Below, one piece after another: positions 9,562 to 61,300 of a stretch of DNA of 64,000 nucleotides. Under the pieces are notes generated by a model. The model did no database searches. It was not told the DNA's origin and saw nothing but the letters and a program-made list of their open reading frames with translations. Each line of letters opens with the position of its first letter. Within the stretch, counting starts at the first letter, position 1. Origin of the DNA: Lepidodermella squamata (lineage: Eukaryota; Animalia; Gastrotricha); the NCBI GenBank assembly GCA_047495785.1, contig JBLDXI010000036.1, forward strand, positions 1,054,001 to 1,118,000, written 5' to 3'. Position numbers and translations under genes: made by a program.

Positions 9562-11979
9562 ATGGCCTATTCACGGCCTAATTCTCGAGGCCAGCCTCGA
9601 GGCTTAAATCATAATGTTAACGAAAGACATCTGAATCCGAACGATCACTACGATGACCGTTTCGCCCAAGTCGAAAGACGTCTCGAAAAAGTTGAAAAAA
9701 TGTCAGGTCAAGTATCATCGATCGAAGCTATGCTGACACAACTCATGTCGAAGCTACAACCCCAGGGTTCTACCGATCCACGAGACCGTCAGAACATCGG
9801 TCACCCCAATGTCTCGAACCACACTTTGAACCAACAAGCCCCAAGCCACGACCGTCAGAACAACAGGCAACCCATTGTCTTGAACAACGATTTGAACCAA
9901 CAAGCCCTAAGCAATGACTGGCAACATGACAGTTATGCCGAACACGTTGATAATGACTTTAACGATGGCTGGAGCTCGGACAACCACGGTCATAGTCGCC
10001 CTCAACGCCTAAGCCGAGAACAATATCAAGTTTCGACTAGCAACAAGTATGACGCCCTAGCAGGTCAAACTGATGATGCCACGATTCAGGAATTCCTGGA
10101 AAACCGAATCTTGGCTTCGGAGCATTTAGACCCTCGCAAGGTCCATGAAAAACCGCACCAAGATCGATCGAACCAAGCTTTCAATCGAAATAGTCGTCAA
10201 GCGGCTGGCTATAAGTCAGGTGACACATCTTTCCGCGAAGCTGATAGACCCGACCGTAAGTCGATCAGCAGTGGATCAAACGACTCCCGCGAAGAGATTG
10301 AAGGAAGAAGAGGCGAAAGTGCGCCCTTAGACGTCGGAAGCCCGAAAAACTTGCCGAAACCGGCCGGAGCAAAGAAACGAACGAAAGGCGGACCAGCATC
10401 GCCACCTGACCAGACCGACCCGAACGACAAGAAAAGAGCTAAGGCCAATGACGGGCTCGCAATCGTCCGTTGGACAGCTAAAAACTTTGGCAACTACCTA
10501 TTCGATTGGAGATGCATACACACTGACGAAGAATTCGAAGAAGCATGGGTTTGCGAAACGCAAAGTTACTACAATCAAGCAGGTAGTCCAGAAGACAAAC
10601 TGAAACTACTGTTTGGAGCCCCGAGTAACAGAGCTGCGAGCAATTTTTACCAAACCTTGCCTAAGCAAGGACAAATCGAAATCGTCACAGCTATTAACAG
10701 GCTAACCCCGGCTGAACAAGTGAGGATGCATATTGCGTTCGAGAGAGGAAACGGCGGGACAGCTCCGACTGAAGACCAGTACGTCGAAATCGCCCCAGGA
10801 GAGAAGGCCCGACTCACGAAATTCGTAGAAGACCTTAAGGCGGCAAGAACCGTGAACGAGCATGTCGACCCCGACTCCGACGAAGATGACATGGAAACTA
10901 ACGGCGAAGAAGCCGTATCGGAACAGGAAGAAGAAAGTGAAGATGAAGAAGAAGGAAAACGGAAAGAGCCCAAACCACCACGTCAGCCTATGGGTTGGTT
11001 CATCGATCGAGTACAAGGGTACACGAACAAAAGGGATATACTCGAAGAACTTGAGCGAATTGCACCAGATATCGAGTTGAAGCGAGTCAGCCGCTTGGAA
11101 AGAGGAGGCTTCTTCGTGCTCCCACTTGCCAAAGACCGCGAAAAGTGCGACAAAATATTCGCAGAGGGTAACGTGCCAAGTGATGCCTTCAAAGGCCAGA
11201 AGATTTCGATTCATCGTCCAGGCCTCCAAGGTCGTGTCATCAGCCCCGAAGAAGCGAAAAAGGTTGTTATCAAAAGCGTCGACCGAGAATTATCGATCGA
11301 AGATTTGAATTACTTCTTGGAAAAAGCCGGTTACCACCCGACTGAAATTTTCTGGCTCACACCGGAGGGCAAGCCAACAGGGCTTGTCAAAGCCGTCTTT
11401 GCAACGGAAGAAGAAGCGAAAAAACTGAAAGAAGCCGGAAGGATAAAGATGGCGTCTGTCGTGTACTACACAACCAGCTCCGCTCCCAAGCCGTCGGTAC
11501 CACAGTGCTTCCTCTGCAGAGCCTGGGGCCATGTGCAAGGTGCGTGTCAAGAAATGACCAACATGGGAAAAGATGCCGCAGAAACCGAAAAGGTCAATTC
11601 GCTTCGAGTCTGTGCTAAATGCGGTGAAAAAGGGCACCACCACTCAAGTTGCGTATCCGAAGCACCTAAGTGTATAAACTGCTCTGGTAATCACGCTGCC
11701 ACCTCAAAGCAGTGCGAGACCTACCTTGCAGCCCGCAAAAAACGAGACGAGGATACCAAGAGGGCCGAAGAAAGGTACTTTGGTAAATCATCCAAATCCT
11801 TCAAACCGGCACAGCCGCCAAAACAGAACCCCTGGGAAAACAAGGTGAAAATTGACCACTTGAAGGTCATCATGACTGTGATCGGCCAAGTCCTACCCAT
11901 GCTTCAAGAAAAGAAGTTGAACGAAAAGAAAATTTCTGAACTCGTCAAAAGCGCTCTAGGCCTACATATACGTTCATAG
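9562..11979 (+). CDS. LINE ORF1 gag-like nucleic-acid-binding protein (805 aa)
   Basis: Three zinc knuckles CFLCRAWGHVQGAC, CAKCGEKGHHHSSC, CINCSGNHAATSKQC preceded by an RRM-like segment; N-terminal coiled-coil-like stretch and a 22-aa tandem duplication. Confidence 0.92.
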   Translation: MAYSRPNSRGQPRGLNHNVNERHLNPNDHYDDRFAQVERRLEKVEKMSGQVSSIEAMLTQLMSKLQPQGSTDPRDRQNIGHPNVSNHTLNQQAPSHDRQNNRQPIVLNNDLNQQALSNDWQHDSYAEHVDNDFNDGWSSDNHGHSRPQRLSREQYQVSTSNKYDALAGQTDDATIQEFLENRILASEHLDPRKVHEKPHQDRSNQAFNRNSRQAAGYKSGDTSFREADRPDRKSISSGSNDSREEIEGRRGESAPLDVGSPKNLPKPAGAKKRTKGGPASPPDQTDPNDKKRAKANDGLAIVRWTAKNFGNYLFDWRCIHTDEEFEEAWVCETQSYYNQAGSPEDKLKLLFGAPSNRAASNFYQTLPKQGQIEIVTAINRLTPAEQVRMHIAFERGNGGTAPTEDQYVEIAPGEKARLTKFVEDLKAARTVNEHVDPDSDEDDMETNGEEAVSEQEEESEDEEEGKRKEPKPPRQPMGWFIDRVQGYTNKRDILEELERIAPDIELKRVSRLERGGFFVLPLAKDREKCDKIFAEGNVPSDAFKGQKISIHRPGLQGRVISPEEAKKVVIKSVDRELSIEDLNYFLEKAGYHPTEIFWLTPEGKPTGLVKAVFATEEEAKKLKEAGRIKMASVVYYTTSSAPKPSVPQCFLCRAWGHVQGACQEMTNMGKDAAETEKVNSLRVCAKCGEKGHHHSSCVSEAPKCINCSGNHAATSKQCETYLAARKKRDEDTKRAEERYFGKSSKSFKPAQPPKQNPWENKVKIDHLKVIMTVIGQVLPMLQEKKLNEKKISELVKSALGLHIRS

Positions 11980-14759
11980 TCTGCCATATTAACGTCAACC
12001 ACCTGTCATATGCAAGGATCTGTGAACTCCGCCACCTCGCAGAAACCTTCAATTTAAAACTTATCTGTATTAACGAAACCTTCCTTAAGCCACATAATCA
12101 ATTCTATCTTACCGGTTACACGGTATACCGTCACGATCGAACGTCTGCTGATGGCGGCGGGGTCGCAATACTCGTTAGTAACGACCTAGTCGAACACGCC
12201 GAAAACCTCGGCGGCATTACGATCGACGGCTGCGAAATTCAAATGGCACGAATCAAGTTAGCAGGCGTAGCCTCAATCAAATTAGTCTCTGTATACTGCC
12301 CGCCAACGATACTGCTATCAGATGCGGCAATGGCTCACATAGCACCCGACGAAAACACGATCATCTGCGGCGACTTTAACGCACATGATCGTGCACTAGG
12401 TACAACAGGCAGGCCCGACGCAAGCGGTGCAAAACTAGTCAGCCATTTATTTAACTACAACCTTAAGCTGCTATCGCAAGGCGAGCATACTTACACAACT
12501 AGAAAAGGAAGGAAGGAATGCCTAGATCTGTTTATCGCCGGTGGCAAAGCTGCAAAACGTGCGACCGCAGTCGAAGTCCTACCGGATATCGGTTCGGACC
12601 ACTTACCAGTTGCCCTACACCTGCGTACCGACCTGAAGACACCTAGTAGCTTCCCCGAGCTCAGGCTGGACCTGAACCATATGAAAATCGAGCTGTTCTG
12701 TCAAGTGATCGAGCGCGATTGCAGTAAGCTGGATACGTCCGACCTGCATGTAGTCGCCGACATTGACAGAGCAGTCGAACAGCTCGAAACGATCATCACC
12801 AATGCTACCAACGCAACAACACCGAGATGCAGTGCCAGCAAACTCAAAGGCTGGCGTTTAACTGCTGAAATCTCAGAAGCAATCAAAGAAAGGCGGCGGG
12901 CGAGAAGAGCCTTGGAACGGTTCCGTACGGCAGTTTCGCGGAGCCGTTACAATGCTGCTTCGAAAAAGGTTAGATACCTCATCGCCAAAGAAAGATCGGA
13001 CAGATTCAAGCGTCGTTGCACGGAACTGTCAAAGATGTTGCATGACAAGCCAAGACTCTTCTGGAAGGAATTCAACAATCTTGCCAACAACTCGATCGCT
13101 TCGAACCAGCGGCAGTACCCGCCGATCACTAACGACCAGGGCCTCGAAACCTACACCAATACAGGCAAAGCCAAGATCTTCGCCGACCATCTCGAAAATG
13201 TCTGGAAAACGCCTAGCGACCCCAGTTTCTGCAAGGGAACGGAGGAGCTTGTCGAGAGAACCCTGAAAAACCGCAACAGCGAAATCGGACGTCCCGTCAA
13301 TCCAAGGCGTGATAGGTCCGGCCGCTGGACCGTGAAGCCGGGTGAAGTCATAGCGACAGTAAAGAAGCTTAAAAGCACGGCGCCGGGCGAGGACGGCATT
13401 CTCAATGCGGTTCTGAAAAGAGCACCTGATGCCTTCTGGGAGAAAGCTACTGATATTTTTAACGCCTGCCTACGGTACAGCCATATGCCTGCCAGGTGGA
13501 AGAAGGCCATCGTCGTGCTCATTCCGAAAGAAGGGAAGGACTGGCGAACACCAAAGGGCTACCGCCCGATCAGCCTCCTCAACTGCATCGGGAAAATACT
13601 TGAGCGCCTAGTCGCAAGGCGGGTGCTTGAGGAAATGCGCGAGCGAAAAATCATGCCGCTAACCCAGTCGGCCTTTCAGAACCGTCATTCGGTTGAAGAT
13701 CATCGATACCGCATCGTTCAACTTGCTGTCACCGGCTTGTTAAACCATGAAGAAACGTACGTCTCCTGCCTCGACATCGAGGGTGCCTTCGACCGCATCT
13801 GGCAGCGGGCAGTAATCTATAAACTGCTTAATTTCGGCTTCCCCGACATCGCAACGGCATGGATCGCGGACTTCCTCACTGACCGCGAATTCAGCTGCCG
13901 GGTAGGCAACGACCATAGTAGTGTAAGGCAGATCACCGGCGGTGTTCCGCAAGGTTCACCGCTGAGCCCGATACTTTACGTACTATATACGGCCGACCTA
14001 CCTCGGGAACTACCGAAATCAGTAGCCAACTGCCTTTTCGCCGACGACGTGGCTTTAATATCGAAAAATAAGAAAGGCGAGGTTGCCCGCGACAATCTGA
14101 ACGATGGCATGTCGAAGGTTTCGGCATACTTCAAAAAATGGCGCCTCAAAGCGAACGCCGGGAAGAGCCAAGCGATTCGAATTTCGAATAAGTCAAAACC
14201 GCCCGGGTCAGCCATTAAATTGGATGACACCGAGTTGAAGTGGCACAACGAGGTGAAATACCTGGGCGTGACTATTGACTCGAAGCTGCTATTCAAAAAG
14301 CAAATCGACTTGGCTATCGCGAAGGCGGCACAACGAATCACGGCACTGCACGCTGTGTGCCGAAGAAGTTACGGTCTCAACAAAGAAGCAGCCGTAACAG
14401 TGTATAAAGCGTACATTAGGAGCGTTCTAATCTTTGGCAGCCCGGCCTGGGTCGGTATCGACAACGGGCTCTGGCAAAAGCTCGAGGTCATTCAGAACCA
14501 GGCGCTCCGAATCGCCATGCGCCTTCCGCCTTGGCACAACACCGACGATCTCCGAAAAAGGGCTGGCATCGAGTCAATTCGAGACCATGCCACCAGGCTT
14601 GCAACAAACTGGTTGAACCGATCGTTGCAATACAACAACCTGGACGGACAAGAAAGTGCTATCCTAATGCGCAAACCAGTGGATGAACGAGTGTATCGAC
14701 ACTCGAAACGACCGCCTCTTTCAGCCATGCGGCTAGTACTAGATGGTCGACGTCCGTAA
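11940..14759 (+). CDS. LINE ORF2: AP endonuclease + reverse transcriptase (no RNase H recognised); frame opens at 11940, first ATG only at 12243
   Basis: APE motifs HINVN, CINETFL, YRHDR..GGGVAIL (all upstream of the first ATG), GDFNA, SDHLPV; RT motifs YRPISLL, LDIEGAFD, GVPQGSPLSP, FADD, KYLGV. Confidence 0.93.
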   Translation, partial: TRQKRSRPTYTFIVCHINVNHLSYARICELRHLAETFNLKLICINETFLKPHNQFYLTGYTVYRHDRTSADGGGVAILVSNDLVEHAENLGGITIDGCEIQMARIKLAGVASIKLVSVYCPPTILLSDAAMAHIAPDENTIICGDFNAHDRALGTTGRPDASGAKLVSHLFNYNLKLLSQGEHTYTTRKGRKECLDLFIAGGKAAKRATAVEVLPDIGSDHLPVALHLRTDLKTPSSFPELRLDLNHMKIELFCQVIERDCSKLDTSDLHVVADIDRAVEQLETIITNATNATTPRCSASKLKGWRLTAEISEAIKERRRARRALERFRTAVSRSRYNAASKKVRYLIAKERSDRFKRRCTELSKMLHDKPRLFWKEFNNLANNSIASNQRQYPPITNDQGLETYTNTGKAKIFADHLENVWKTPSDPSFCKGTEELVERTLKNRNSEIGRPVNPRRDRSGRWTVKPGEVIATVKKLKSTAPGEDGILNAVLKRAPDAFWEKATDIFNACLRYSHMPARWKKAIVVLIPKEGKDWRTPKGYRPISLLNCIGKILERLVARRVLEEMRERKIMPLTQSAFQNRHSVEDHRYRIVQLAVTGLLNHEETYVSCLDIEGAFDRIWQRAVIYKLLNFGFPDIATAWIADFLTDREFSCRVGNDHSSVRQITGGVPQGSPLSPILYVLYTADLPRELPKSVANCLFADDVALISKNKKGEVARDNLNDGMSKVSAYFKKWRLKANAGKSQAIRISNKSKPPGSAIKLDDTELKWHNEVKYLGVTIDSKLLFKKQIDLAIAKAAQRITALHAVCRRSYGLNKEAAVTVYKAYIRSVLIFGSPAWVGIDNGLWQKLEVIQNQALRIAMRLPPWHNTDDLRKRAGIESIRDHATRLATNWLNRSLQYNNLDGQESAILMRKPVDERVYRHSKRPPLSAMRLVLDGRRP

Positions 14760-38733: not shown

Positions 38734-41700
38734 CCCTCTAAGTCCGACTATGGGTTTTCGTCAATTGCAACTTCTCGGCGTAGGTGTGGATTGCTTATTA
38801 ATTTTCGGCATAAAATTTTTATACCACGGTTGAGCCCCTTACCTGAGCTTGCAGCACCCAGGCGGGCGCGTCCGCAACGTGCGATTACGCAACACAGTAA
38901 TTAGGTAAATGTCCCTCGACTCTTAAACTCGTCGAAACACATGTGCCATTATGTGTGCACACATGATGAGGGGCAATTTTTTGTCGCTCTGATTGCCATT
39001 CGAACACACGAACGTGTTTTGGAAACCAATTAACATGCGAAAACACATACGATCTTTTAATCACTGTTTTCGAGGCCCTAAATTGAGTTGCGCAGCTGTG
39101 CTTATAAAAATGTTGTCAGCAACATCTGGTGCTTACGCACTCTAGTGGCAGCCATTTTTCACTTGACAAAAAGTTATCAAGTGATTTTGGCGTACCAATT
39201 CCGATAAATTTGATTGCCGCCGATTCGATATCGATTTTCATCGGCTAAAAGCGCGTAGTTAGGGTGCGCGCCGGTAATGCTAGCCGGTTTGTCAAGGTGC
39301 CACTGATTTATCAACTAATCCTGGCCGAAAAATCGAGGTTTTGTCAACTTGCATCAAAATTTTCAGAGTTTTGTTACAAGTCGAAACACAAGTATGATGT
39401 AACAGGACTTTTCAAGGTGTTTGTTGCAAAACAATGGGTTCGCATGGCATTGCGAAACATGAGAAGACAGCCATATAAAAGACCTGCAATAATCTATTTT
39501 ATGGTTCCCCAAAATTGTTAACTTCGTTATCAAATGTCACTTGAAGACGACAGTAGCAGTGAAGAGGACCTGGTGGAGATCGGCGAAACCTCGTCGGAAT
39601 TGTCGTCTAACGATGAAGAGCTTGGCGTCACGCTCGACTCCGTCGTGCCGAAGACGAAATGGCGGAAAATGAACGAGGAGAGACCGTCTCACCAAGTTGA
39701 AAAATGCGCGTTGGTCAGCGGTCCATCGGAACTTTTCATCAAGAACCTCGTCGCAATGGAGCAAGGTAATTAATATTTATCAAATTTGTTGTACCGCTCA
39801 CAATTTTTTTGTAGCCATGGAAAAAAACCGCAAAAAACTTGGCGGGAAATCGCGCTCTGATAGCAATGCCGGCCCGGACGGGGGCGAAGAGAATGGTACC
39901 GAGGAGCAAGTTGTTGAAGAACCGAGCGAGGCAGGAAACGTCGTCGAAGAAGTCCAAGAAGCGCATGAGGAGGCCGAAGAAGAATTCCAAGATCTTGACG
40001 AAGAAGCCGATGATGAAGCGGAAGAAGACGAACAGCAATCATCAGTTTATTCTGACGGCGACTCAAGCGAATCAGAGAGCCGATACAAGTTGGTCAAGAG
40101 AAGAAGTCATCGGAAAGTGCTTCCTTTCTTCCTCCTCATGTTCCCGATCGTCAGCTTGCTGGTCGCTGAAACGAATAGGTACGCGGCACAGAACTACGAT
40201 CCATCGAAGCCGCAATTCATCAACGTCACCGAGGAGGAGTTCTTCGGGTTTCTGGCGTGCGTCATTGGGATGGGTCTTGTCAACTTGCCGGCGCTTCATC
40301 AGTACTGGCAATCTTCGGATGCTTTGTTCTTTCAGCCGACGATTGCGAACATCATGAGTCGAGATCGGTTCAGAGAAATTCTGACTCACCTACACGCTGC
40401 CGACAACTCCAAAGCCTTGCCTCGAACAGACCCGAAATTCGACAAGATTTTCAAGGTCCGAGAAATGCTACAACAGCTGCAGGACAGCTGGCAAGCTAAT
40501 TTCACGATAGGACCCGATGTAAATTGTTGTCTTTTTGTCTTTTTGCTCATCTTTATTGTCCTATTCTTGACAGATTGCTGTGGACGAGCAAATGATCGCC
40601 TTCAAAGGGCGCACCAGCCTCAAACAATTTATGCCAATGAAACCCGTCAAGCGAGGTCTAAAGATTTTCGCCCTGGCGCTATCACCTATCGGTTATATCT
40701 TTCGAGCACTGCTGTACAGCGGGAAAGGAGATGAAAGTACGTGATTTTTTTGTTTTGTTCTCTTGTCTACCCTCAATTTTCAAATAGCTGGCTCGGACGT
40801 TGCTGCTCAAGCAGGTCTCGCTGAGCGGATCGTTTTCAAGCTCTCAACTTCAATCTGGGGCTGCTGGCGCATTATCTTTATGGACAATTGGTTTTCTTCA
40901 GTTTCGCTCTACAACCGCCTTTTTGCTGAGAAAACTTACGCAGCCGGCACCGTTATCGCCAATCGAACAGGTCTGGATCCGGCCGTTCCGATCAAACCCG
41001 CGTCAAAGCTACCGCGTGGAAGTTCGCAGTTCAAAGTTCAAGCTGACTTGCTTTATCAGTCGTGGCAAGACTCGAAAGTCGTCAACTTTCTCTCAACTCG
41101 ACATTGCGGCACTGGTAACGACACGGTAAAGCGCAAGCAGAAAAACGGCAAGGTCGCTGAGTACTCTTGTCCCCCCGTTGTCGCTGACTATCAGAAGAAC
41201 ATGCGCGGCGTAGATGTCGCCGATCGCCTCCGCGAGTCGTACGATTGCACTTTGCCCGGGCGCAAGTGGCACCGCCTCGTGATTTTCTATGGCATCGAAA
41301 CAGCAATCAACAACGCCCTGTTGGCTTTCAAGTCCACGGAAGATGATCCCGACTATCCTAGCTTGCTATTCCGTCGTCGGCTATTCGACGAGTTGATACA
41401 AGCCTCTACCTCCGGCAATGTTACGCGCAAGGTCGGCAGAAAACGCAAGCTTTCTGAACAGCTCGACCCGCTGGTCCCGAGCGACAAATGGCGAGAAGGC
41501 GGCCATTTTCCTGCTCACAATGGCTTCTATGAGTCGGTCGACGCTCGCGGTTACAAACGCGCAAAGCCGCGCGTGTGCGTCTACTGCAAGGTGGCGCCTG
41601 GCTGCACACCGCACATGGCGTCCTGGCACTGCGCTCAATGCGACGTCGGTCTTTGCTGTGAAAATTTCGGGAAATATGGTCCTCATGCCGGGATCTGACA

Positions 41701-46031: not shown

Positions 46032-49000
46032 ATGGAATCTGAATTTTTCTTCTTTTTAATTCTGGTGATTCTCCAAGGTCTGTCGATCGTCTCATCTGAA
46101 GACGGGTCTATCCCAGAAATCTTAGATAGCATTGACTACATTGAGGTTGACTCGAATTTCAACTTTGACGATGCAGATCTCCTGCCAGAGTTGGCAACAA
46201 GCAAAATCGGAACTGTTGTATACAACGTTTGTTTGAATTTTGTTCTTGAAACAGGTTTAACCTTGCTCAACTTCAGGAATCAATCTACTTTGCTCCTATT
46301 TTTGTATCTGAAACAAATTCATCCTATATGAAACGCATGCCCCTGCCAAACTATGCTGTGTTCAAAATCGCTTCGATTGAAGTTGACAACAAGACTGAGG
46401 CGATCGCAGACATGAAATATCGCTTCTACTCATCGATTGGCGTGTGGCAGGAACTGATTCAGACAAAGCAAGGGATCAAAATATCCTCAGTTTTTGGCTG
46501 CACTTTCGACTCCAAACATTCTTACTTCCATTATATGACCATTATAGCCGAAGGGAAGTTTTTTGGTTCCACGGTTCGATTTCATCAAAATGAAAGCTAC
46601 GCCAAACTTCTCAGTGATGGTAACTTTAGAGTTACCATCAATAAAACCTTCGAGACAGTGGCTAATCGGAGATTCAGGTGAGCTATTTTTAGTTCTAATC
46701 CTGCTTATTTGTTGACCCCTCAGAATTTCAAAAACTATTAAGGATATAGTGATCCTGTGAATTTTCGAATTACTGAAAAACGAGACTCCATACTCTATGC
46801 CAGGCGTAGTCAATCGTGGCGATTTTCGCCAAATTTCGAGTTTTTCAACATCCGCTAAAATTTCAACCAAATTTCACGGAAATTTGAGGAAAAATACATT
46901 GAATGAAGGGGGATTGTTTGATATTAAATTAGTCATCCGTAATACATAGCATAAAGGAATTTTTGCGTGTCGAATGACCTTGTGACTAGGCCTGCCCTAC
47001 GTGTTCGCTCAATGAGCGGAATTGTAATTTTGTCGTCGTTGATTTTTCAAGGTGGCCTGCAAAAAAGATTTAATGCTATACATACTTGGTATAAAACTTT
47101 ATCTTCCATTCCAGAAAAGTCGAATTCTTCGATTCGCAGAGCTTCAGTTCCGCGACCATATGTGTAAACAGCAGTTTTGCTCTTGACGACAAACTCTCAT
47201 TCGATTTGCCAATCACTTCCGAGATATCTGAATCGGCAGTATCTTTCCTGACTGTTGATCAGTTGCCAGTAGAAGCTCAAGGCGAAATGGAGTTTCTGAT
47301 GACCTATCCGTTAATATCAGCTAGAGCTTTGTTCAAAATTCAAATCGGCGGATGGCAGTCGTATCACATTGGTGGTAGTGTCAATGTGAAAGGGAAAGGT
47401 TAGTGTATTAAACATTTCAATAATCCTGAGGTCGTTTTCAGAAGAGCCTTCTACTTTCATCAGGACCTCAGCAAGCTGTAATAAATAGAGCGCTTCAATC
47501 CGCATACTATCAAGTTTTCAGCCAAATCGTCGCAATCTCGAGATCCAAATTAACATCCTCGCAGGAAGTAAAATATTTGTACGGAGCTTCCGCGTGTGGC
47601 CTCGGCCGCGGATCATCCCGGCGCCAGTTCGGGGGCCATCGAATTGTGGAGCATGACATTTTTCTCTTCCAACCTGTAGCTTGGCTCCATCATGAACTCG
47701 CGAACCAGATGATGATGCTCTTCTCACCAGCCGCAACCGGGTCTATAATGACCTCCTTCGAAACTGCGCAAGGGGAAGAAGAAGTCTTCGATACGGCCCC
47801 GACCTGGTGTCAACACTGCTCAGAGCAAGGCATCTACAGCGACGGCCTCTTCAGTTTTGCCACCCGGATTCTTTACTTCATCACTGGGTCGAAACCTCGT
47901 TCTGATATCTTGCTCGAAAAGAACCGCAATATTAATGAAAAATTCATCAGCGAATTATCGAAAGATAGCAACAGCTTCATATCGATTAATGGTGTTACTG
48001 GGCCGGATGAACTTCACATGAATCAGTCGAATAACTTGGTTACCAATATCCTTGGCCAACTCGCAGTTCACTTCACGCAGTACCTGTGTTGCCTAAATCG
48101 AGAGCCAATCGATGACGAGTTGTTGGACTGTGCTAAGCGGATAAAGTTTCCGTTTGATAATGTTACAAAGATCAACTATCAGTTTGATGGTTTCACTTTG
48201 AATGATGCGATCTCCCAGGCTGATGCTCTCCTGGCTCACTTTCCAGTTGGATACAACTTCTCTGGAAGGTTCCTCGAGCAAGCCCCGCCTGAGATGTTGA
48301 GAAAGGATATTGATGTAATGATAATCATTTTCATGGTGTTAAAACTGCCTCTCTATTTTTGAGATCTCAGATCTCAGCGCTAATGATCGCTGATGTGATT
48401 TTAATAATTACACTGCAATTTTTTACTAAATCAAGTTCGATTCCACATGATGATGGGAAAATCGATGAGAGACTTACACAAGGTTCCATCCCGACATTAT
48501 AGGCTTTGGCGCTACCTTTCAACCAGGGTGCGACAACCCAGCTTTGGGACTTCAACCAGGGAAAGTCCGCAAAAACCTTTGGGGGGATCCTTTGGTCTCT
48601 CCGGCTGGGTGCTAGAAAACACCTCATCTCCCGGATCCTGCTCCGCACCCTGTCCCCAACACACGTTTGTTTAAGATGCAGAACTTCGTTGTAATCTTAA
48701 TATTATTGATTCACCACCATGATGGTAAGGCGATGAAGGATAATCTTAATATTGTTCATATCAGACTCAAACGATACATTCCACTAATACTCATGACTAA
48801 AACCGCTTTTTCACAATATCAGCAGGCTTTTTACTGTTCAGAGGCAACATCAATTTCACTAATCAGTTAATTTCATGATATCGGCAGTCCAGAAAGCCAA
48901 ACACGGTTTCGAAGTAGAATCCCCGAACTAGGAGGTATTATCGGGCCCACATTTTACGACCAATTTTATGAGACATCTGTTATCTTTTCCGTAATTTCCA

Positions 49001-51835
49001 CCTTGGCCTGTCGAACTGAGTGTAATACCTACACCTCATTATGCTCATTATGCAAATGTCTTACTTTCTGCTTCGCTTAATTCCTAATTATCTGTTAATG
49101 TTATAATCAAATGACATCTTGGTTTTTAGAACTACAATCGTCGCTTCGGGAGAACTTCCGTTGGTGGCGTTGGAATCGTAGAAATTCCTGCGACCTCACT
49201 ATCAATCAAAGCCATTCTTGAAATGCAGCTGGCCACGGTGTCTTCATTCGCAACTGGGAGGAAGGATTTCGAGAATTTACTGCAAAACTACCAATCTGGC
49301 CCGTTTATCATCTGGAGAAACGTGACCGATGCGAAAAATGCAGCAATTGGACACACCTATACCGCGGCTGCATTCCTGGGTGTTCTCATGTTCGGATTTG
49401 GCGGGCTCCGAATAAGGACTAATCGGGTCGATATTCAACAGCCATCGTTACCGGAAGGCATTGACAACCTCACACTGTCACAAATCGCATTTCTAGGCTA
49501 CGAAGTCAACTATCACGTTAATGCATCGCATATTACCTTGTTTTCGCTTACTGATAGCTTCAGGAAAACAACACGGCTATTCAGTCGAATGAAAAACGGG
49601 TATATCCCACTGACATCGGCTGTGGTTTCGCTGGAAATCCCACCAGTGCCCGAGACATCTGATACGACTGCGGCGATTTACTCTTTCATAGCGGATAGCA
49701 GCTCGAAGTGCGTTTTGGATGACCGAAACTACAACAGCCACAACCCGTACTATTCTGTGGACGAAGCCGAGGACAATTCCAAAAATTCAGGTATCTCTAG
49801 CCAATTCAGTGTAGGAAGGATCCTCGAAGTGGGGTACCTTTGAGCTAGCTTCAAGTATTTACGGTCCCGAGTTTATCGGACCAAAGCAGTGCGCTAGTGG
49901 TATAGCTAGTGGTCCCCCACACTACGTCAATGCCAAGGTGGAAAACACCAACAAGACCCTTTGGCCATATCGGGGCACGAAAACACTGCATAGTTCGGAT
50001 CCTACATCGAGCACTGAATGGTCCCCCTTTGGGTTTTCAGGTTTTTTGTCTTCGCCATTCGAGCTGGGTAGTGCACGAAGTAGGATCCTCGAACTAGGAA
50101 GTGTTTTGGGGCCCCGATATTATGGCCAAAGGGTCTCTCCGTGGTTTCCACCTTGGCCTCGTGGCCCCCATTCCTCCCGTACTTCGCGCACTGGAGCTGG
50201 GGGTACTGTTCCCACTTACCCCCGTACTTCGAACACTTCGCCAATTATTAAAGTGTATTTGTGAATTTAAGATTCTGGAGACGATCAACTGCTCCTGATC
50301 ATTTTGACATCCGCATTCGGCGCCATCGTCGTCATAGTCTTAGGGCTTGGGTTCCTCTATCGAAAACGGTTTCGAAAAAAGGCGGCTAGTATTGTAGCGA
50401 ACAGCGATTCCAGCTACATCGTACCATTCGCAGACTTCACAAAGCTACTCGAAGGCATGGAAGGCGCACAAGATCTCATCATCCTGATCGAGCGAATCAA
50501 CGTTTGCAACGACTGGCTCGAAATAACCGGCATATTGGGAACTGGCCACTACGGCGCCGTGCAACGAGCCGTTCTCCGCATGCCTGGGCAGAGCGAGCAG
50601 GACGTAGCTGTTAAAAGCCTCCGGCCTGACGTCAAGTCCGATTTTGTTGGCCTTATCAAAGAAGCCCATGTTATGAAAGACTTCGACCACGAAAACGTTC
50701 TGCCGCTCATCGGAATCGCGATCCTCCACGACCAGCCGCACCTGATCGTGCCTCTCATGCAAAATGGGACTCTAAAGGAATATCTGAAGCCGAAGAAGTT
50801 GGCGGATGTTAGTTACAGCGAAAGGATGCGGTTCATCACCCAAATTTGCGATGGTATGGTGTACCTTCATTCAAGGAATTGCCTTCATCGAGATCTGGCA
50901 TGTCGCAATGTGTTGCTGTCTAGCGATTTAACGTGTAAGATTTGCGATTTCGGCCTGTCGCGAGTGTTGGAGCAGGAGGATGACTACTATCGAACGTCGA
51001 CGGAGAATGAGTACGCTGTTCCGGTCAGGTGGCACCCGCCCGAGTCGGTGATGCGGAAAATCTTTGTTCTCAAGAGCGATGTTTGGTCCTTTGGCGTTGT
51101 CGCCTGGGAAATTTTCACAAGTAAGGAAACAAAGTTCGCTAAATCTTCTAAAATAGTTCACCTGTTCGAAAGTTTTAATTCCCGAGAGACAAGTATATTT
51201 CAGTTCATTGATTAAGCAAAAGAATCCTTCCATGAGAACAAAAAGAAGAAGATAAATTGTTCAACCCGGAAAAATACCGGAAAAGTCACTTTCGGGTTTT
51301 CCAGTTTTCTTTAGCTCTGTAAATGATGGAAACAGTGTAGGATCTTCGAACGAGGGAATATTTTCCACCCGGAACTTGTTGACCAAAGGTTCCCTTCGGA
51401 GGTTTATTCGGGTTTCCCAGCCTGGAACTTTCGAACCTTTTGACCAAAGGTTCCCCTCAGTGGTTTATTCGGGTTTCCCAGGACCTTTCGAACATAGGCG
51501 GATATGAAACCCCTTTACTATGGAAATTCATGATGTTGAAGGTTCAGTTAAAAGATGTTATTTCTTCTTACAGACTGCGAACGCGAACCTTACGACCAGC
51601 TTCAAGCCATGGAGGTTATTTTCAACGTTTGCCACGGTTTTCGATTGCCAAAGCCACCGGCGTGCCCAGATAAAATGTAAGTGTACAGAACATATCGAAC
51701 AATATTCTCTAATAATTTTCATTTTCTAGCTACGATTATATAATGGCGAAATGCTGGCAGCAAAATCATGAAGATAGGCCGTGCTTCAAGCAGATTCAGG
51801 AAATGTTACAAGACCAAGCATTCACCCATTGTTAA
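46032..51835 (+). CDS. Receptor tyrosine kinase with GH65/PGGHG-like ectodomain (~1167 aa)
   Basis: Exons 46032-46226, 46277-46677, (46750-46803 uncertain), 47115-47398, 47464-48314, 49130-49790, 50272-51120, 51574-51676, 51730-51835 join in frame. Signal peptide; GH65 motifs GVTGPDE, SQADALLAHFP, FLGVLMFGFGGLR; TM LLLIILTSAFGAIVVIVLGLGFLY; kinase GTGHYG, VAVK, HRDLACRN, DFG, YY, SDVWSFG. Confidence 0.85.
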
Positions 51836-51951: not shown

Positions 51952-53274
51952 TCAATCCATGATAACGCGATCGGTTATCGATTCCAATATCGGTTTCGTT
52001 GGCAGAGTGAAATTCAGCTCAATCAGCGATTTTGTATCCAGCTGGTTGTAGGTTTCAATCAAATTTCCATCCCAATCGTGATCTTGCTTCTTCTCAAGGT
52101 GTCTGAAATCAGTCCATTCAGGATTCGGCCAGCTGACTAGGTTCCATTTCTTCGCTAAAAGGCTGAAAATTGTTTGATCATGACGATTTTCTTTAAAATT
52201 CGGCAATTCGTCCCTCAACTGGCTGGGCTCATCGGTTAAAATTCGCGGGTCTTGAGAATAGGTCAACCATTCGCTAACGAAGCGTATCGAGTCGAAAGAT
52301 CGGCGAAGCATGACGTAGGCGCCGTAGATTTGCATGGTTTCGTTAATTCGAGGCATTAAATGTTCGACATTCAACAGGAGATAGGCGTCGGATTTCGACC
52401 ATGGAAATTCGGGAAATCTTTGGTAAAATACAACAATATCTTGCTCCAGTTGAGCCTAAAACGAAATTCATAAAATAAAAATAGAATGGAAAAAAATCGG
52501 GAAAAAATTTTAAATTTAAATTTTTGAAATTTTTGAATTTTTGTAATTAAATTTCAAAATGTATTCAGATTTAAGATTTTAAATATTTTTTTAACTATTT
52601 TTTAAGGTGGGAAGTTAGAGGAAAAAACCCGAGGAAAAAATCTGGGTATCAAATTTCAATTTTAATTCAATTTTCGAATTAAAATTTCGATATTATGAAT
52701 TTGTTCGAGATCGAATGCTTACCTGTAAGCAAACAAACTCTTCCAAATTATTGATAACAAATTTATCCGAATCTATGTAAAGCATGACATCGGATTCGTC
52801 CAGCTCCAATAGAAATTTGAGAATCAAATAGGGTTTCCACAACCAAAGCCCACCGCCGCGTTCGATCGAGATGATATCCCGATTTTGGGCTTCAAAATGA
52901 TCGTCCAGTATCGGCTTAGCGACTACAACGCAAATATCGATTCCTGAAATTTTAACAGCCATTTCACAGTGCTTCTTAGCTTCTTCAAGGTACCAGCCAT
53001 GCGTAGCGCCTGTTACAACGATTCTATGTCCTTTAACTAGGCTACAACGCTCATTTTCGGGTAAAGTCATGTTTGGTAGCTTCAGGGGCCGATAGATGAA
53101 GATTGAGCCTGGGGCACTTTTCTCCGCAATTTCGTCGATCCATTTGAGAGAATTTTTCGGGAAAAGCTGGTTTTGAAGGTCATTAATCCAGCTAGTAGCG
53201 AGGAGATAGGTCAGGAGGAGTAGACCAACCAGTTTCGGAAACAAAAATTTCGATTGGCGAATCATCAGGCTCAT
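51952..53274 (-). CDS. Putative GT-A-fold glycosyltransferase, type II membrane protein (351 aa)
   Basis: Exons 53274-52723 and 52455-51952; N-terminal TM; motifs RGGGLWLWKP, LYIDSD (DxD), WSKSDA, NRHDQTIFSLL. Confidence 0.7.
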
Positions 53275-53697: not shown

Positions 53698-54705
53698 TCA
53701 GAATTTCTCAGGCCTGTAACCGTCATTTTGCGAATCATTCGATCCAATGAAAGCCATCCAATCGCTGCGCCAGGATTGACTCGAATATTGAACAACAAAA
53801 GACCCAGGGAAAAGCTGTTTGCAAGCCGCTTCATCGAAAACCGGCGACAACCCAGAACAAACTGGTTTCACCTTAGCATCTTTCCACGAAAAAGGATGGA
53901 GAACATTTTTCGGAAAAATTCGCAAATCGTAAATAAATTCCGAACAATTGTACAGCGACCCGGCCGGCTCGATACCCGTCATTTCCCGCCTCACGGCAAT
54001 GTAGCTCAAAATCGAGTTGAAAAACGCGACGGGGCCGGTGATAAAAACCGGCCTAACGTCACGCCTCGCATATTTCTCGGCCGCAAATTGAAACTGGGTC
54101 AACGCGATAGAAAACAGCAAATGGCCGGGCTGCGCCGCCATAACACTCGCTGGGACGAAATTTTTGTCCAAATCCTCCTCAAATTTTTCCATCATATAGC
54201 CGAGTAGGACAGGGTGAGCTTCATCGGCCACCAGGGTGTCTAATGGCTGTAACGGCTCCGTGTCCAAATCCGCATACATCCCGCCGTAGCGGTGCATATA
54301 CAAAATTCGGCTAACGTCAGACTTCATAACGCCAACAGGCAGCGAGTCGTAGAAATTGAGGAGGTAAGGGTAGAATTTAGCGACCAGGTCACGGTTCATT
54401 GCGTCCGTCCATAACTGGTGCGACCAGGCTGGGTGAAGGTCGAGCCACGTTTTTCGGTATCTCGCGTAATTTTCCGGTAAATTATCCGAATTTTTCCAGG
54501 TTTGATGAAGAATTTTTGGAATTTTCCCGCCGAGCGAGGCGGCGATTAATTTCGCATCGATCGAATCGAAATCGATTTGTTCCGAATTTCCAGGATCAAA
54601 TGCTGATAATAAATAGCAAATAATTATTGTGGAGCTGATTAAAATTATTGATATTAGAAAATTGAAGCATTTTCTCAGCTGAAAATCACTTGCATTAAGC
54701 AACAT
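53698..54705 (-). CDS. GT32 glycosyltransferase (MIPC synthase SUR1/CSH1-like), intronless
   Basis: N-terminal TM; IPKILHQTWK, LWTD, SDVSRILYMHRYGGMYADLD (DxD), TGP. Confidence 0.88.
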   Translation of the reverse strand: MLLNASDFQLRKCFNFLISIILISSTIIICYLLSAFDPGNSEQIDFDSIDAKLIAASLGGKIPKILHQTWKNSDNLPENYARYRKTWLDLHPAWSHQLWTDAMNRDLVAKFYPYLLNFYDSLPVGVMKSDVSRILYMHRYGGMYADLDTEPLQPLDTLVADEAHPVLLGYMMEKFEEDLDKNFVPASVMAAQPGHLLFSIALTQFQFAAEKYARRDVRPVFITGPVAFFNSILSYIAVRREMTGIEPAGSLYNCSEFIYDLRIFPKNVLHPFSWKDAKVKPVCSGLSPVFDEAACKQLFPGSFVVQYSSQSWRSDWMAFIGSNDSQNDGYRPEKF

Positions 54706-54819
54706 TTTTTCGAATAAAAATAAAAACAATAAATGTTGTGTAGCAATTCAAGCGTGGCACGCGATTTAATTTTCGACGTGAATTCATTCATTTTTATTTT
54801 TGTTTTTCACCACGAAAAA

Positions 54820-56512
54820 ATGTTGATTCGTTCGATTCCGAGTGTTAGGTTGAAGCGATTCTTCACGTTGATTTGCTGGACGGCTGGTTTTGTGGCGATT
54901 TCGACCGTGACCTTGATTCATTCAAGCGTGAAATTTTCGATTTTTAAACCAATAGTTTCAAGTTCATGCCAGGTAATTTTTGAAAAATTAATTTATTTTA
55001 AGTATTAAAAATTTTTGAGATAGAAAAATGGGAATTTTCTGGATTTCGAGATGGGTAGGAGGCGGGAACATATTCGCAGAATTTGTCGGAAAATTGCGGA
55101 AAATGGCAACAATTTCAAGGGAGATCAGGTTGATTGGTCAGCTTTCGAGCAGCGAAGATGGAAAAATATGACGCGACCAAGGTGGTGGTATGACCTGGTT
55201 GTTAATGAGAAATATCAGTTCATTTATTGCGCGTAAGTTTCGAGTTTCCATGATAATTTTCCATTTTCTTCCAGATTAACTTCCAGATTAGTCCCAAAAT
55301 TTTCCATATTCCAGAATTCAGTAAATTATTACTAAAATTATAATAAAAATTGAGTCATTAATAGTGATATTTTTCGATTTTTAATGATTATTGGTTATCG
55401 ATTATCGATTATCGATTCTGATTTTTTTTAATAAAATGTGATTTTGAAGGCTTCATGAAAATTTCAAGATTAACGGAAAATATTTAAAAAAATTCCATAA
55501 ATTGATTTACCGATTTAATTTTTTTGGTCAATTTTTTCGAAATTTCAATCGCTCAACAGGACGCCCAAAGTCGCGAGTACGAATATTCGCCATTATATTT
55601 TACGGCTTTCGAACGCTTCAATCGATGAACAAATGCTGGGCGAAGAAGAAACGGCTGATACCTACAACCGCGATGACCAGCTGGAAATCTACCAGAAATT
55701 GAATAATACCAGGCGGCATTTTGCTCTGCGAAAATTTCACACATTCAGCAATGTTTCAGTGGCCAAATCCATATTGAGTGATTTCCGCAAATTCGTCTTC
55801 ATTCGAGACCCGGTCGATCGCCTGATTTCAGCTTGGCACGATAAGTTATCGAAACCGGCTGATAAAACTGACCTGGTTCATCAAAGAAATTTCAAAGTAA
55901 GCGAAAAATTGTGAAAAATTCAAAATTTTTGAAATTTTAAATTTTAAAAATGAATTTGAAAAAAAAATTAATTTCCAAATTTTTCAAAAAATTTCAAAAT
56001 TTCAAAAATTTGAATTTGAATTTTGAAATTCTAAATTTTAATAATAGATTAATATATTGTTTGAATTTCGATTATTTCAGGCCGTTGGTAGCGATATAAT
56101 TCGAAAATGTCGACCCGGCGCGACCCAGGATGAAATCAGTCAATCGCAACCAGCCACCCTGGAAGAATTTTTGTGTTACCTCGCTCAGTCTGATGACTCA
56201 TCAAAATTCAACCGTCATTGGAGGCCTCAGAACCAGCTATGCTACCCGTGTTCAATCGACTACGACTACATTGGCGTAATGAGCAGCGATGACCTGGAAA
56301 ATTTCGGCTGTGAAATGGAGCATATCGCGAGGCAATTAACCGGCCGAAGCGACGTGCCAAGTCTCGCTAAATCGCCTCGGCTTTACGGCGCGAGACAAAA
56401 CTATCTATCGATATTGGACGAGAAATCGAAGAAATTGCTTGGAGAAGTGATAGAAAAACATTATAAAATCGATTATGAACTATTCAAATTCGCTTTCAAA
56501 GCTCCAATTTAG
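54820..56512 (+). CDS. Carbohydrate sulfotransferase (Sulfotransfer_2, CHST11-14/HNK1-ST family)
   Basis: Exons 54820-54972, 55024-55232, 55560-55896, 56081-56512; PKVAST (5'-PSB), RDPVDRLISAW (3'-PB), HWRPQ..CYPCSIDYDYIG. Confidence 0.9.
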
Positions 56513-56574: not shown

Positions 56575-58281
56575 ATGGTGGTGAGGCGAGATCGATGGAC
56601 GTGTATTGGACTGCCGCTCGGCTGGTTCTTGCTGAATTTTCTCGCCTATTTGGCTTTGATTAGCTACAAATCAACGACCCAAGTTTCGAAAATCGACGAT
56701 GGCCGGCCGATTATCACTGCCTTGTTCGGCAAAATTATGCCTAGAAAGAAAAAGGTTGAAAATTTCGCAAATTTCAGACAAAAAATAGGTATAAATTCCC
56801 TTCGAAAATTTTCGAATATTCAAACAATTCCAAAAATGAAAGCAATTTTTTTTGCCAAGAACAAAGATTTAATTTTCAAATGTAAATTGAATTTGAAAAA
56901 CTGAAATTCTGAAATTCTGAAGTTTCAATTTTTCAATTTCTATCCGAATTTTTCGGCATTTAAATTTTTTTTAACTTTATAAAGGATTTTAAAATTTCAA
57001 AAAATCTATTAAAAATTCTCTAGTTCTCAACTTGACCTAATTTTTTATTATAACAGGCTTCAGATTTGAAAATTGAATTCGAAATTAATGAGCGGAAGCA
57101 TCGAATCACTGAAGCGTGTCGAAATATGCGAGAAACGCGTTCAATCCCTGCCTCAAATTTCGAACTCGACTGGGACTCATTCGCTGAATTTCGCCGCAAT
57201 AAATCAGTCAAAATTCGCCCGGCTTGGTGGCAGTTTTTACTCGTCAATGAAAAGCACCAATTTGTCTACTGCATGACGCCTAAAGTTGCTAATACCAACA
57301 TTCGGCACTACATTATGAAGCTATCGAATAATTCGATTTTAGGCGGCGTTTCACTCGAAAAATACGACCGGCTTCAACAGTTGGAAATTTATCGGCAATA
57401 TTTGATGTATAATGAAGACGTGAGGCCGTTATCGTATTTCGAAATCGATCGAGCTCAAAAAATTATGGCCAAATTCAAGAAAATTGCGTTCTATCGGGAC
57501 CCGATTGATCGGCTAATTTCGGCATGGCGAGAAAAATTGTCCACGATCAATTCGGATGGTGTAAATACAAAAGTCTTCAAGGTAAACAAATAAATTGAAT
57601 TAAATTTTGTAGTGTGCCAATAATTTCTTCAGAAATTATGTTCAAATTATATTCGAATTGGTGAACTTTTTTTTTTATGAAATTTCAGATTTCCAATTTT
57701 TGAAATTTAATTTTTTTTTAATTTTCAACAGATCAAAATGCACAACTTTAAATTTCTTTTTTGACATCATCTTTGAAATTTTTAATCAAAATTTTCAAAT
57801 TTCAAATTTCAAAATTTCAAAAACTCTGAAGTAAAGATTCATTAATTTATTTCATTCGGTAATTTATTTATAGAAAATTGGCCGCCAAATAATGAGAAAA
57901 TGCCGTTCCAATGCGACCTTGGCGGAAATCGATCGCGGCCTTCCAGTCACCCTGGATGAATTTCTGTGCTTCTTTGCCTCAATGCCGCCATCCATGACCC
58001 TTAACCAGCACTGGCGATCACAGTTTGACATTTGCAAATATTGCGCTATCGACTACGATTATATCGGCTATTTGCTGGCGAAAAATGGTGAAAAATTCAG
58101 CTTGGAAGTTGAGTTCATTTTCCGACAGCTGACTGGCTTGAAAAAGGTTCCGAAATTCCCGCGACCTAATCAAGGGAAATCGAATATGGCATTGAGCCAG
58201 AAATCGCAAGATACTCTGAGATTCATAGCTTGGAAAAAATATTCTATTGACTATTTGCTATTCGATGTCGGAACTGTTTAA
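56575..58281 (+). CDS. Carbohydrate sulfotransferase, tandem paralogue
   Basis: Exons 56575-56754, 57057-57581, 57874-58281; PKVANT, RDPIDRLISAW, HWRSQ..CKYCAIDYDYIG. Confidence 0.9.
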
Positions 58282-58339: not shown

Positions 58340-61300
58340 TTACCAGGTTGACGGACAGAAAGAAGCACATGCAGCTCGAAAAATAAATTTGAAAGATGAA
58401 ACTGAGCAACCCGCAGGCAGGGTCTGTTGGTATCCATAGCCATCTGCATAGGATAAAACCTCGGCACAATAGGCTTTGTGCATTCATACTATCCGATGTT
58501 AGCTTTACTATTGCAATGCACTAATTTATTTTCTTAAAGTTCGGAATTTGTCAATAAATAGCATTTGGATTTAGAATAGTAATTAGGCTTAAGGTTAGCA
58601 GTTGGCATAATTCAATAGCAGTCAGTAACGGCTTCGAGTCGATGGTTACCATTTTAGTTCATGCCAGGAAATTGGAAAGCAGCGCAATTGATCTCGACAA
58701 TTCGCAGCTGGCCCGAAGTGAGAACTTGATTGAAGATGTTGATGCAAGACAAACCCGTGCCAAGCTGATCTTGCGCATCTGCCCAGGATCTGACATAGGA
58801 CGAAAAATTGGTTATTTACGCAGTTATAGGTATAATAAACAGTTACCGCCCAATGATGAATTGACCACTTTTCGTGATGGGCCGCTGACCACTGCCTATC
58901 AAGAAACTCTGGCCGTCGGCATAAAAACTCAACTTGTCGCCGTCCGCATCGAACGTGATTGCTAAAAGCAGCCAATACTGCCTCGTCGGGCAGGTTATTG
59001 AAGTTGAATTTTGGCCGTATGGCCGAATGTTAAAAGAGTATCCTGTGGCAGTGACTTTAAGTCCCTGCGCCGTACCGTCAGGGGCGAATTCAAGTATCGG
59101 CTTGTTCGACTGAATAAAACTCGGGGCAAAAAAGGAGATGGTGAAACTGCCACTGGCGAGCTTCACTTTGTCAGAAGTTACAACTATAGGATCGGCAGAG
59201 TTGTAAAGAAATGCTGTATTCGCTACAAAAAAAGGCCCGGCAGCTGGCGTCAGAGCCGTGTTAGGAGGTGTGGCATCGGCTCTAGGATCGACAAGATCGT
59301 TGAAATCGGACACCAGGGGCCAAATAGCTGTGTTTGAGGGCAGAAAGGTGGCTAATGATTCGCGAAGCCAAGTTTTGCCGGCGTGAATTTGCGCACACTT
59401 CTTCCTCACCATCCACAATTGTTCGTAGGATAGAGCTCGATCGAAAATTGAGACACACGTTAGCTGTCCCGGAAGACTCGCGTTGTTGGCGAGGTTTCTG
59501 ATAATTTTTATGTGATTGCTCGTAATAACTGACGATGTAGTGTACCCACCATATCCTCGGCCGCAAACAAGTGTCAGCTGTTTGGAAATGTTATCATATG
59601 AGACGGCGAAGAAGACCCAAGGCTGATATTCATCAGTTCGTCCATAGCAGAAGCCCATCCTGGCTGGCCCATTTAAGCCTGTCAAAATATTACTGGCTGA
59701 ATGAAAACTACTAATATTATGCAGATTCAAATGGCTAGGATTGTTAAATAACTAGGATTCGGGCTTTTTTATTCATCCGACCTAAATCTCATAGTCCAAG
59801 TACTGACGCTAACCGTTGCAGAAAAGTAGTTTATTGAGAAACCACGAGACTCAATTGGGGAAACCTATAAACGATAGAAAACAAGGACTAAAACAAATTT
59901 AGCCATAGTTTGAAAACATTTTCAGCTATCGTAGAACTATCCACGACTTCCAGGGAGCTCAATATCATTACAACTCACCCTCCCACGCCCCACCTCCATC
60001 CAACCCGGCCCTAGACCGGGCACGAAAACTAAATATTAGCCCACTGTTTCGCCAATCGTCAATTGTGAGTTTTCGGAGCTTGTTTTAGTGGAAAGCTTTC
60101 AAAATTTACTCGCACCCCAGAACTTCCAGTTATCAGGATAATAATGTAGATCAATTTCGCTCTCACTTCATCCAGCGCCAAATTACGCACCGCTACGGAA
60201 CAGAAATTGATAATTGATATAGTTTAATAATTTGAGCGAGTCTGAGACGTCTTTCACAATATTAAAATTGAGAAACCCCGCAGAAAAAATTGATTAACAT
60301 TTCACGCAATGCTCGCAAGGGGTTTACCCAAACTGGTATAGCCACGGCACTTATTAGTTGACAGATGAATGGATTTCTGAGTTTTTCAACGACGCTAACG
60401 ATACGATCAGAAAAAAATAAAAAAAATTTACCCGCATATGTCTGTATCACGTTCGATTTAGTATTAAAATCCATCCGAAATAGCAGTTGACTGTCGTATA
60501 ACTCGAGAATTCTAACGTCAGCAGCAGAGAAATTCGCAAACCCAGCATAGAATGCGATTGTGAATGAATCATTTAGAACGAGCCGGCTACTTGCCACTTC
60601 AAAATAGCCGGCTGAATCTCCGACAGAAAGTGCCGCGTTAGGATAGTCGAATGGCCCGGCTACAAACGAGAGCGACGAGCCACCAACTATCGCTGATTCA
60701 ATATTGTTGCCACTGATATCGCGGATGCCATATTCTTGTGTCAGGGGGTAGAAAGCCAAGTCGCGGGGTAACCCGAAAGGAGTCACTATTCGAGGAAAGA
60801 GTTTCATTCACCGGAAAGACTGATAATCAATCAAACTCACGCTGATTGCACTCTTCAATCGTGGCGTACGTCGTGCTATTTGCTTGCGTCTAAATTGCAA
60901 TAACATTAACTCAGATTAACAGCAAACAATAATTGTTACCATATTCTGCGGACAATTATCTGCCACGGGAACGCACACGGCAGCCATCAGCTTCTGATTC
61001 GTGCAGAGTTTGTACTAAAACAAATAAAGTTATGTTTATCTTCTTAAATTATGTAAAGATGAAAAATTGGGGAAATTGAGAAACTTCTATGATAACTGCT
61101 TTCGCCAGAAACGTTTTTAAAACTTGAATATTGGTTCGTTTGGCGAAAGTGATTTTCAAGTTTTCAAAGCAAATACCCGAATTTCTGTCGCCGCCATCTT
61201 GCAAGCGTCGTGATTTTCTTTGAATGACGTTGAGTTGCGATAGACTGCACCCTAACATCAATAAATGGCATCAAAGTCCGAAACCAGGTCAACAGTCAAT

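Follow-up and report, generated by a model that had tools for sequence, protein, structure and literature searches.

A gene of Lepidodermella squamata predicted to encode a receptor tyrosine kinase with a GH65-type pseudo-enzyme ectodomain

Analysis of a 64,000-nucleotide stretch of Lepidodermella squamata contig JBLDXI010000036.1 (hereafter the window, whose coordinates are used throughout) indicated that a single gene at positions 46032-51835 of the forward strand probably specifies a receptor tyrosine kinase (RTK) of type I with 1149 amino acids. The entire ectodomain of this protein would be a full-length pseudo-enzyme of glycoside hydrolase family 65 (GH65), acting as a binding module rather than as a catalyst. 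We give this reading a probability of about three in four.

Gene model and domain organization

The coding region consists of eight exons (Table 1). All introns were checked on the sequence and found to be GT-AG, and the joined exons form a frame of 3450 nucleotides without an internal stop. An earlier note on this DNA had counted nine exons; the sequence needs eight, and a ninth was neither required nor found. This was the sole discrepancy with the gene structure given there. The phase-1 intron 49791-50271, which the earlier note had singled out as the key junction (CAG/gtatct..tttaag/ATT), was exact in its coordinates, and the layout of signal peptide, ectodomain, transmembrane helix, basic RKRFRKK segment and complete tyrosine kinase was borne out, with an extracellular part of about 775 residues. 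An alternative in-frame ATG at 45981 could put 17 amino acids ahead of the signal peptide, and an AATAAA is located about 50 nucleotides 3' of the stop codon. No second copy of the gene was found within the 64-kb window.

The gene mixes short introns (50-65 nucleotides) with longer introns that bear repeats. An intron repeat at 48561-48757 showed a contig depth of 854 against about 47, and a weaker copy of it was found at 7610-7725 on the reverse strand. Intron 6 contains, at 51372-51481, a 49-nucleotide unit that is repeated at a spacing of 61 nucleotides with 90% identity.

Table 1. Features of the receptor gene and of neighbouring genes (window coordinates)
Feature	Position	Strand	Content	Basis or remark
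Exon 1	46032-46226	+	ATG 46032, signal peptide (amino acids 1-22), first strand of GH65 N-domain (..LATSKIGTVVYN)	
Exon 2	46277-46677	+	N-terminal beta-sandwich domain of GH65	Profile and P0001 alignment
Exon 3	47115-47398	+	End of N-domain and helical linker	Profile and P0001 alignment
Exon 4	47464-48314	+	GHRIVEHD (V for W, E for D), GVTGPDELH (acid Glu retained), ISQAD (S for K)	
Exon 5	49130-49790	+	Final helices of the barrel (PFIIWRN, with Asn for the base Glu; FGFGGLRI), C-terminal beta domain, acidic stalk ending ..NYNSHNPYYSVDEAEDNSKNS	
Intron 5	49791-50271	+	Phase 1, predicted ectodomain/kinase junction	High-copy foldback repeat
Exon 6	50272-51120	+	7-residue stalk, transmembrane helix (about amino acids 802-827), RKRFRKK, juxtamembrane region, kinase subdomains I-IX	
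Exon 7	51574-51676	+	First part of kinase subdomains X-XI	
Exon 8	51730-51835	+	Kinase end (CW..RP) and stop codon	
LINE (long interspersed nuclear element)	9562-14759	+	805-residue ORF1 (zinc knuckles), 838-residue ORF2	
piggyBac-type transposase	39697-41698	+	Two open reading frames (ORFs), PF13843	About 4 kb upstream of the receptor gene
Convergent gene	51952-53274	-	ORFs of 140 and 193 residues, the second with a signal-anchor-like N-terminus	No Pfam match
GT32/OCH1-like glycosyltransferase	53701-54729	-	PF04488	Single exon
Two adjoining carbohydrate sulfotransferase genes	55633-56509, 57066-58281	+	PF03567	One intron each
ConA/LamG-like ORF	58846-59730	-	PF13385	

The Pfam family Glyco_hydro_65m was matched by exon 4 just below its 27-bit cut-off (1.2e-5, 25 bits), so that the HMMER comparison proposed in the earlier note gave a clear result for the kinase family only, and the GH65 assignment needed deeper tests, all of which it passed. 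A phmmer search with exon 4 against 1.84 billion representative sequences retrieved 113 matches, and Glyco_hydro_65m was present in all 18 of the matches that were scanned with Pfam. A GH65 profile of 726 positions was built from 39 of these matches and compared with the spliced protein. It aligned as one domain (profile positions 34-688, amino acids 40-738, 223 bits) that starts at the IGNG-like first strand, reaches the C-terminal beta domain and is undisturbed across four splice junctions, the exon 1/exon 2 join included; the unbroken match over these junctions validates exons 1-5.

A profile made from exons 4 and 5 together with P0001, a metagenomic relative described below, was searched against the PDB. 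The best match was human PGGHG (9sd4-9sd8, E 2.5e-28), and FjGH65A, maltose phosphorylase and kojibiose phosphorylase were among the further matches. Structural models were obtained for exon 4, with AlphaFold (AF2), and for the colinear relative P0001. The model of exon 4, with a predicted local distance difference test score (pLDDT) of 81, yielded the GH65 structural match that the earlier note had set as a check: human PGGHG was the top Foldseek match (E 2e-10, template-modelling score on the query, TMq, 0.67), FjGH65A gave a TMq of 0.71, and a fold search of the ESM Atlas retrieved PGGHG-like clusters with a TM-score of 0.76. [quoted passage not shown] The same order of four regions was found in the single colinear profile match and in the fold matches. 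Profile alignment, PDB sequence search and fold thus agree on a whole protein of the GH65/PGGHG type, from N-domain to C-domain, as the ectodomain, and the motifs quoted for it in the earlier note were all present and lay on the matching positions of the GH65 profile.

Hydropathy analysis revealed only two hydrophobic segments, the signal peptide at amino acids 2-22 and a segment at amino acids 802-827 (LLLIILTSAFGAIVVIVLGLGFLY). The transmembrane helix, a hydrophobic stretch of 24 residues, begins seven codons into exon 6, with DSGDDQ on its outer and RKRFRKK on its inner side, in keeping with the positive-inside rule. N-x-S/T sequons numbered 12 in the 775 extracellular residues versus one in the 314 cytoplasmic residues. 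The predicted signal peptide, the single helix and this glycosylation bias together characterize a membrane protein of type I.

The kinase was found by Pfam as PK_Tyr_Ser-Thr in exon 6 (1e-63), the tail of the domain extending into exons 7 and 8, and the PK_Tyr score of 215 bits compared with 131 bits for Pkinase. The kinase motifs were intact (GTGHYG, VAVK, HRDLACRN, DFG, the YY of the activation loop, PVRWHPPE, DVWS and CW..RP), and the best PDB matches were all tyrosine kinases; Pfam, motifs and structures concur that the tyrosine kinase is complete. These PDB matches, with scores of about 129-159 bits, were to Eph receptors, JAK1, TYRO3/Mer, Met and the choanoflagellate RTKC8, and one higher row of 213 bits represented a two-stretch match to a chain named EGFR. 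Since the scores were nearly equal over several families, the kinase could be placed in no named receptor family (such as Eph, EGFR, InsR or FGFR). The named matches of the kinase were from an annelid and a flatworm, a feature match in the Atlas was to a rotifer cluster, and the closest kinase among 5.8 billion proteins was P0115, with 42% identity.

The predicted junction between exons 5 and 6

Splicing of exon 5 to exon 6 (49790/50272), which would produce the fusion of GH65 and kinase, is probable on sequence grounds. Exon 5 runs without a stop to its donor, whose phase (1) matches that of exon 6. The frame of exon 6 is closed upstream by a TAA at 50268-50270 and has no ATG ahead of the transmembrane helix, in line with the earlier description of this exon as one without a signal peptide of its own. 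A stand-alone kinase would therefore start past the helix, leaving both the helix and RKRFRKK untranslated. Six nearby GT/AG pairs were in frame and free of stops, among which 49791-50272 was the only plausible one. Alternative pairs (donor 49809; acceptors 50281 and 50338) were rejected as the primary ones, as they involved a weaker donor, the trimming of three residues or a cut in the transmembrane helix.

Within intron 5 (49791-50271) no hydrophobic or signal-peptide-like ORF and no other exon candidate was detected. The intron contains no AATAAA, and a single ATTAAA is located at 50247, 24 nucleotides ahead of the acceptor. About half of the intron is a foldback repeat with arms of 84-88 nucleotides (49932-50015 and 50070-50157) that are 82% identical. 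Its depth is about 28 times normal (1335 versus about 47), and it looks like a miniature inverted-repeat transposable element.

The DNA run that holds the locus also contains a near copy, about 92% identical over exons 4-8 and present at a depth of 34-46. This copy, which may represent a paralogue or else a divergent haplotype, is known from short contigs in which the linkage of GH65 and kinase is not visible. Comparison of the two copies revealed nothing but substitutions in the exons, while the sole indels, +1 at 49830 and -4 at 49843, were located just past the donor, whose GT is kept. The sequence from 49791 onwards thus behaves as non-coding. The ratio of synonymous to non-synonymous differences was 21:10 over all listed sites and 18:3 in exon 6, and the latter indicates that the kinase is under purifying selection.

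The nearest relative of the ectodomain is P0001, a protein of 796 amino acids from a eukaryotic metagenome scaffold (ENA ERZ23486764), which is 36% identical in exon 4 and 27-29% identical in the ectodomain as a whole. P0001 is colinear with amino acids 68-785 of the ectodomain (E 2e-77), and its ORF is uninterrupted over the part equivalent to exons 2-5. Its model (pLDDT 77, predicted TM-score 0.85) superposed on human PGGHG with TM-scores of 0.70/0.80 over about 765 columns. The database entry lacks the N-terminus, for which an upstream exon ending ..LPELSSGIIGTTIYN was identified at the locus (L001:9863-12391). The P0001 locus has an intron after ..IGT.IYN, the same position as intron 1 of the L. 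squamata gene, and this common position indicates that the two are truly related. The P0001 contig is rich in ankyrin-repeat genes.

P0001 has no kinase and ends right after the motif NYNSHN.Y in a hydrophobic tail that resembles a glycosylphosphatidylinositol signal. As this tail stands at the same point, membrane tethering after NYNSHN.Y appears to be a trait of the family. Read-through into intron 5 of the L. squamata gene gives 17 codons and then a stop at 49841-49843, and the tail so encoded is not hydrophobic. Only the splice to exon 6 would therefore supply membrane attachment here.

Several observations weigh against a fused receptor. The sole public run found to hold the locus is a DNA rather than an RNA run, its contigs spanning introns as well as exons at about 47x. 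The pyrimidine tract of the acceptor (tttaag) is weak, and an isoform that retains intron 5 is possible, which would be a soluble ectodomain ending at the 49841-49843 stop. No kinase was found within 10 kb of the P0001 locus. A fusion orthologue was not found either: only two of the 113 phmmer matches of exon 4 were longer than 1000 amino acids, neither with a kinase; a profile search of the 5.8-billion protein set gave only P0001 and one distant GH65 protein, and no GH65-kinase; two metagenome locus scans for a GH65-kinase fusion gave nothing. Finally, the ectodomain of P0115, which carries the closest kinase, is a CUB domain. P0115 is likewise a single-pass receptor, but at its locus (metagenome contig L002:165-1864) the kinase is preceded by an exon that encodes CUB and transmembrane helix together, whereas the helix of the L. 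squamata protein lies in the kinase exon; a Kunitz gene is found downstream. This comparison suggests that the pairing of the kinase module with ectodomains has varied among related organisms.

The best-surviving alternative is that two adjacent genes have been misjoined, one for a secreted GH65-like pseudo-enzyme ending at 49841-49843 and another for a separate kinase. The restriction of the locus to DNA reads, the stand-alone state of P0001 and the stop that follows the donor after 17 codons would all be compatible with two genes. We consider this improbable, because an in-frame stop (50268) closes the frame of the kinase exon upstream and its helix is not preceded by an ATG, 49791-50271 contains neither a signal-peptide nor a start exon, the read-through tail is non-hydrophobic where P0001 has a membrane tail, and the near copy carries frame-breaking indels in the very stretch that would be read through. 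It is less probable still that the architecture is right and this copy is unexpressed or decaying, as a young pseudogene of a multi-copy family. The existence of the near copy would allow for it, but the 3450-nucleotide frame is intact over all eight exons, the splice sites are all canonical and the differences in the kinase are strongly synonymous.

Active-site residues and possible ligand binding

The catalytic residues of GH65 have been described for FjGH65A, in which E472 is the general acid and E616 the general base of the hydrolase; the E616Q mutant retained less than 0.1% activity, and W343, D344, K538 and Q539 of the -1 subsite were reported to be completely conserved among active GH65 enzymes (PMC8626586). 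The mutants E430Q and E574Q named in the PDB titles for human PGGHG fall in the same columns as the acid and base residues of FjGH65A. Alignment of these positions with the 39 relatives used for the profile (Table 2) revealed that the L. squamata protein has the general acid Glu, lacks the general base and has lost two of the four residues for glucose recognition in the -1 subsite, Trp and Lys, while Gln is kept and Asp is conservatively replaced by Glu.

Table 2. Residues at GH65 active-site positions
Position	39 relatives	L. squamata gene product	P0001
-1 subsite Trp	W in 37/39	V	P
-1 subsite Asp	D in 38/39	E	D
-1 subsite Lys	K in 37/39	S	S
-1 subsite Gln	Q in 37/39	Q	E
General acid	E in 35/39	E (GVTGPDELH)	K
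General base	E in 36/39	N (WRN for WTE)	N

The position aligned with the Ser-Ser phosphate site of the phosphorylases is occupied by Pro-Ala (..IPATSLS..), which is hydrolase-like. With the base Glu lost and Pro-Ala at the phosphate site, the protein would not act by the known mechanism of either hydrolases or phosphorylases, and its GH65 ectodomain looks enzymatically dead, i.e. a pseudo-enzyme. P0001 shares the lost base and the point of membrane attachment with the L. squamata protein, and differs from it by a tail without kinase and by the loss of the acid as well (TDK for PDE).

It is highly improbable that the ectodomain has kept enzymatic activity, as a glycosidase or transglycosidase bound to the membrane that uses another base and whose catalysis is reported or regulated by the kinase. 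The retained acid Glu (GPDE) and -1 Gln and the conservative change of Asp to Glu would favour such activity. Against it speak the Asn at the base, where the equivalent mutant of FjGH65A had next to no activity (PMC8626586), the substitution of the -1 Trp and Lys, Pro-Ala as in hydrolases in place of the Ser-Ser phosphate site, and the loss of the acid also in P0001.

The pocket positions differ between the gene product and P0001, while the blocks GLGRG, SGR[FW]LEQA.P.ML, FGFGGLRI, QPSLP and NYNSHN are kept between them, which argues against a conserved canonical glucose-binding role. The earlier suggestion of a sugar sensor for the Glc-Gal-hydroxylysine of collagen or for trehalose is accordingly weakened, given an Asn for the base Glu and V/E/S/Q for W/D/K/Q in the -1 subsite. 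A dead GH65 barrel that keeps the acid Glu and one glucose-contacting Gln might still bind a ligand that bears an alpha-glucoside or mimics a sugar; the protein would then be a direct glycan-sensing RTK and represent a new class expanded in this lineage. We regard this as doubtful.

Were the gene to encode a GH65-kinase receptor, it would likely descend from an extracellular GH65-like protein tethered to the membrane, as is seen with P0001, that gained the exon for transmembrane helix and kinase through a phase-1 intron. A ligand would bind to the GH65 body, perhaps in the remodelled pocket or on the family-specific loop that adjoins it, and would alter the oligomeric state or the geometry of a dimer, so that the kinases could trans-phosphorylate the YY of the activation loop and initiate signalling.

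Genomic surroundings and comparison with known systems

The 3' end of the convergent gene downstream of the receptor gene is about 120 nucleotides from the 3' end of the latter. The GT32-like protein showed 39% identity to its best database match and about 28% to its named relatives, which are from Aspergillus; these low identities might reflect horizontal transfer or poor sampling. Together with the two sulfotransferase genes, the glycosyltransferase gene forms a glycan-modifying neighbourhood beside the receptor gene, which may be a coincidence. An ORF at 60265-60807 that looks related to the ConA/LamG-like ORF had no Pfam match.

Among solved structures, PGGHG/ATHL1 is the best match by both sequence and fold; it has the same four-part layout and the acid Glu is common to both proteins. 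Identity is about 23%, and E574, the base of PGGHG, is replaced by Asn, W300 by Val and the Lys of KQAD by Ser. The gene product additionally has a signal peptide, 12 N-glycan sequons, a transmembrane helix and a kinase. The loop SGR[FW]LEQA.P.ML is common to the gene product and P0001 only, and is an insertion without counterpart in canonical GH65/PGGHG proteins.

The claim of the earlier note that no known RTK has a GH65 ectodomain was upheld in the protein libraries and the literature searched. None of the GH65 matches in the libraries had a kinase, and no description of an architecture combining GH65 (Glyco_hydro_65) with a tyrosine kinase was found in that literature, in which a survey of the holozoan tyrosine kinome did not mention glycosidase ectodomains and a GH65 review did not mention a kinase or transmembrane form. 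The GH65 ectodomain would thus be new for RTKs, while the design principle of a glycosidase fold joined to a kinase has precedents.

RTKs diversify mainly through exchange of their ectodomains, for which few folds are in use. The Venus kinase receptors are RTKs with a Venus-flytrap ectodomain, and resemble the predicted L. squamata receptor in that the ectodomain is one large module from a family of small-molecule-binding proteins; the fold is different, and no Venus-flytrap domain was found in the gene product by Pfam. Klotho and beta-Klotho are GH1 pseudo-glycosidases that act as co-receptors of FGFR. The Klotho-FGFR system likewise relies on a dead cell-surface glycosidase fold to provide ligand binding for a tyrosine-kinase receptor, but Klotho is a GH1 TIM barrel on a separate chain, whereas the L. 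squamata protein would hold GH65 and kinase in one chain. The plant receptor-like kinases with a GH18 ectodomain, such as tobacco CHRK1, of which 91 plant sequences have been counted (PMC5485988), share with the gene product an ectodomain from a glycosidase family, a single transmembrane helix and a cytoplasmic kinase. These plant proteins are of independent origin, and combine GH18 with a Ser/Thr kinase where the gene product combines GH65 with a tyrosine kinase.

An entire GH65 enzyme body would add a new fold to the ectodomains of RTKs, and the protein would become the first pseudo-enzyme of GH65 for which a non-catalytic role is proposed. After GH1 (Klotho) and GH18 (the plant receptor kinases), GH65 would be the third glycosidase fold recruited independently to signalling, and, if glycan sensing were true, the receptor would be a one-chain counterpart of the Klotho-FGFR pair.

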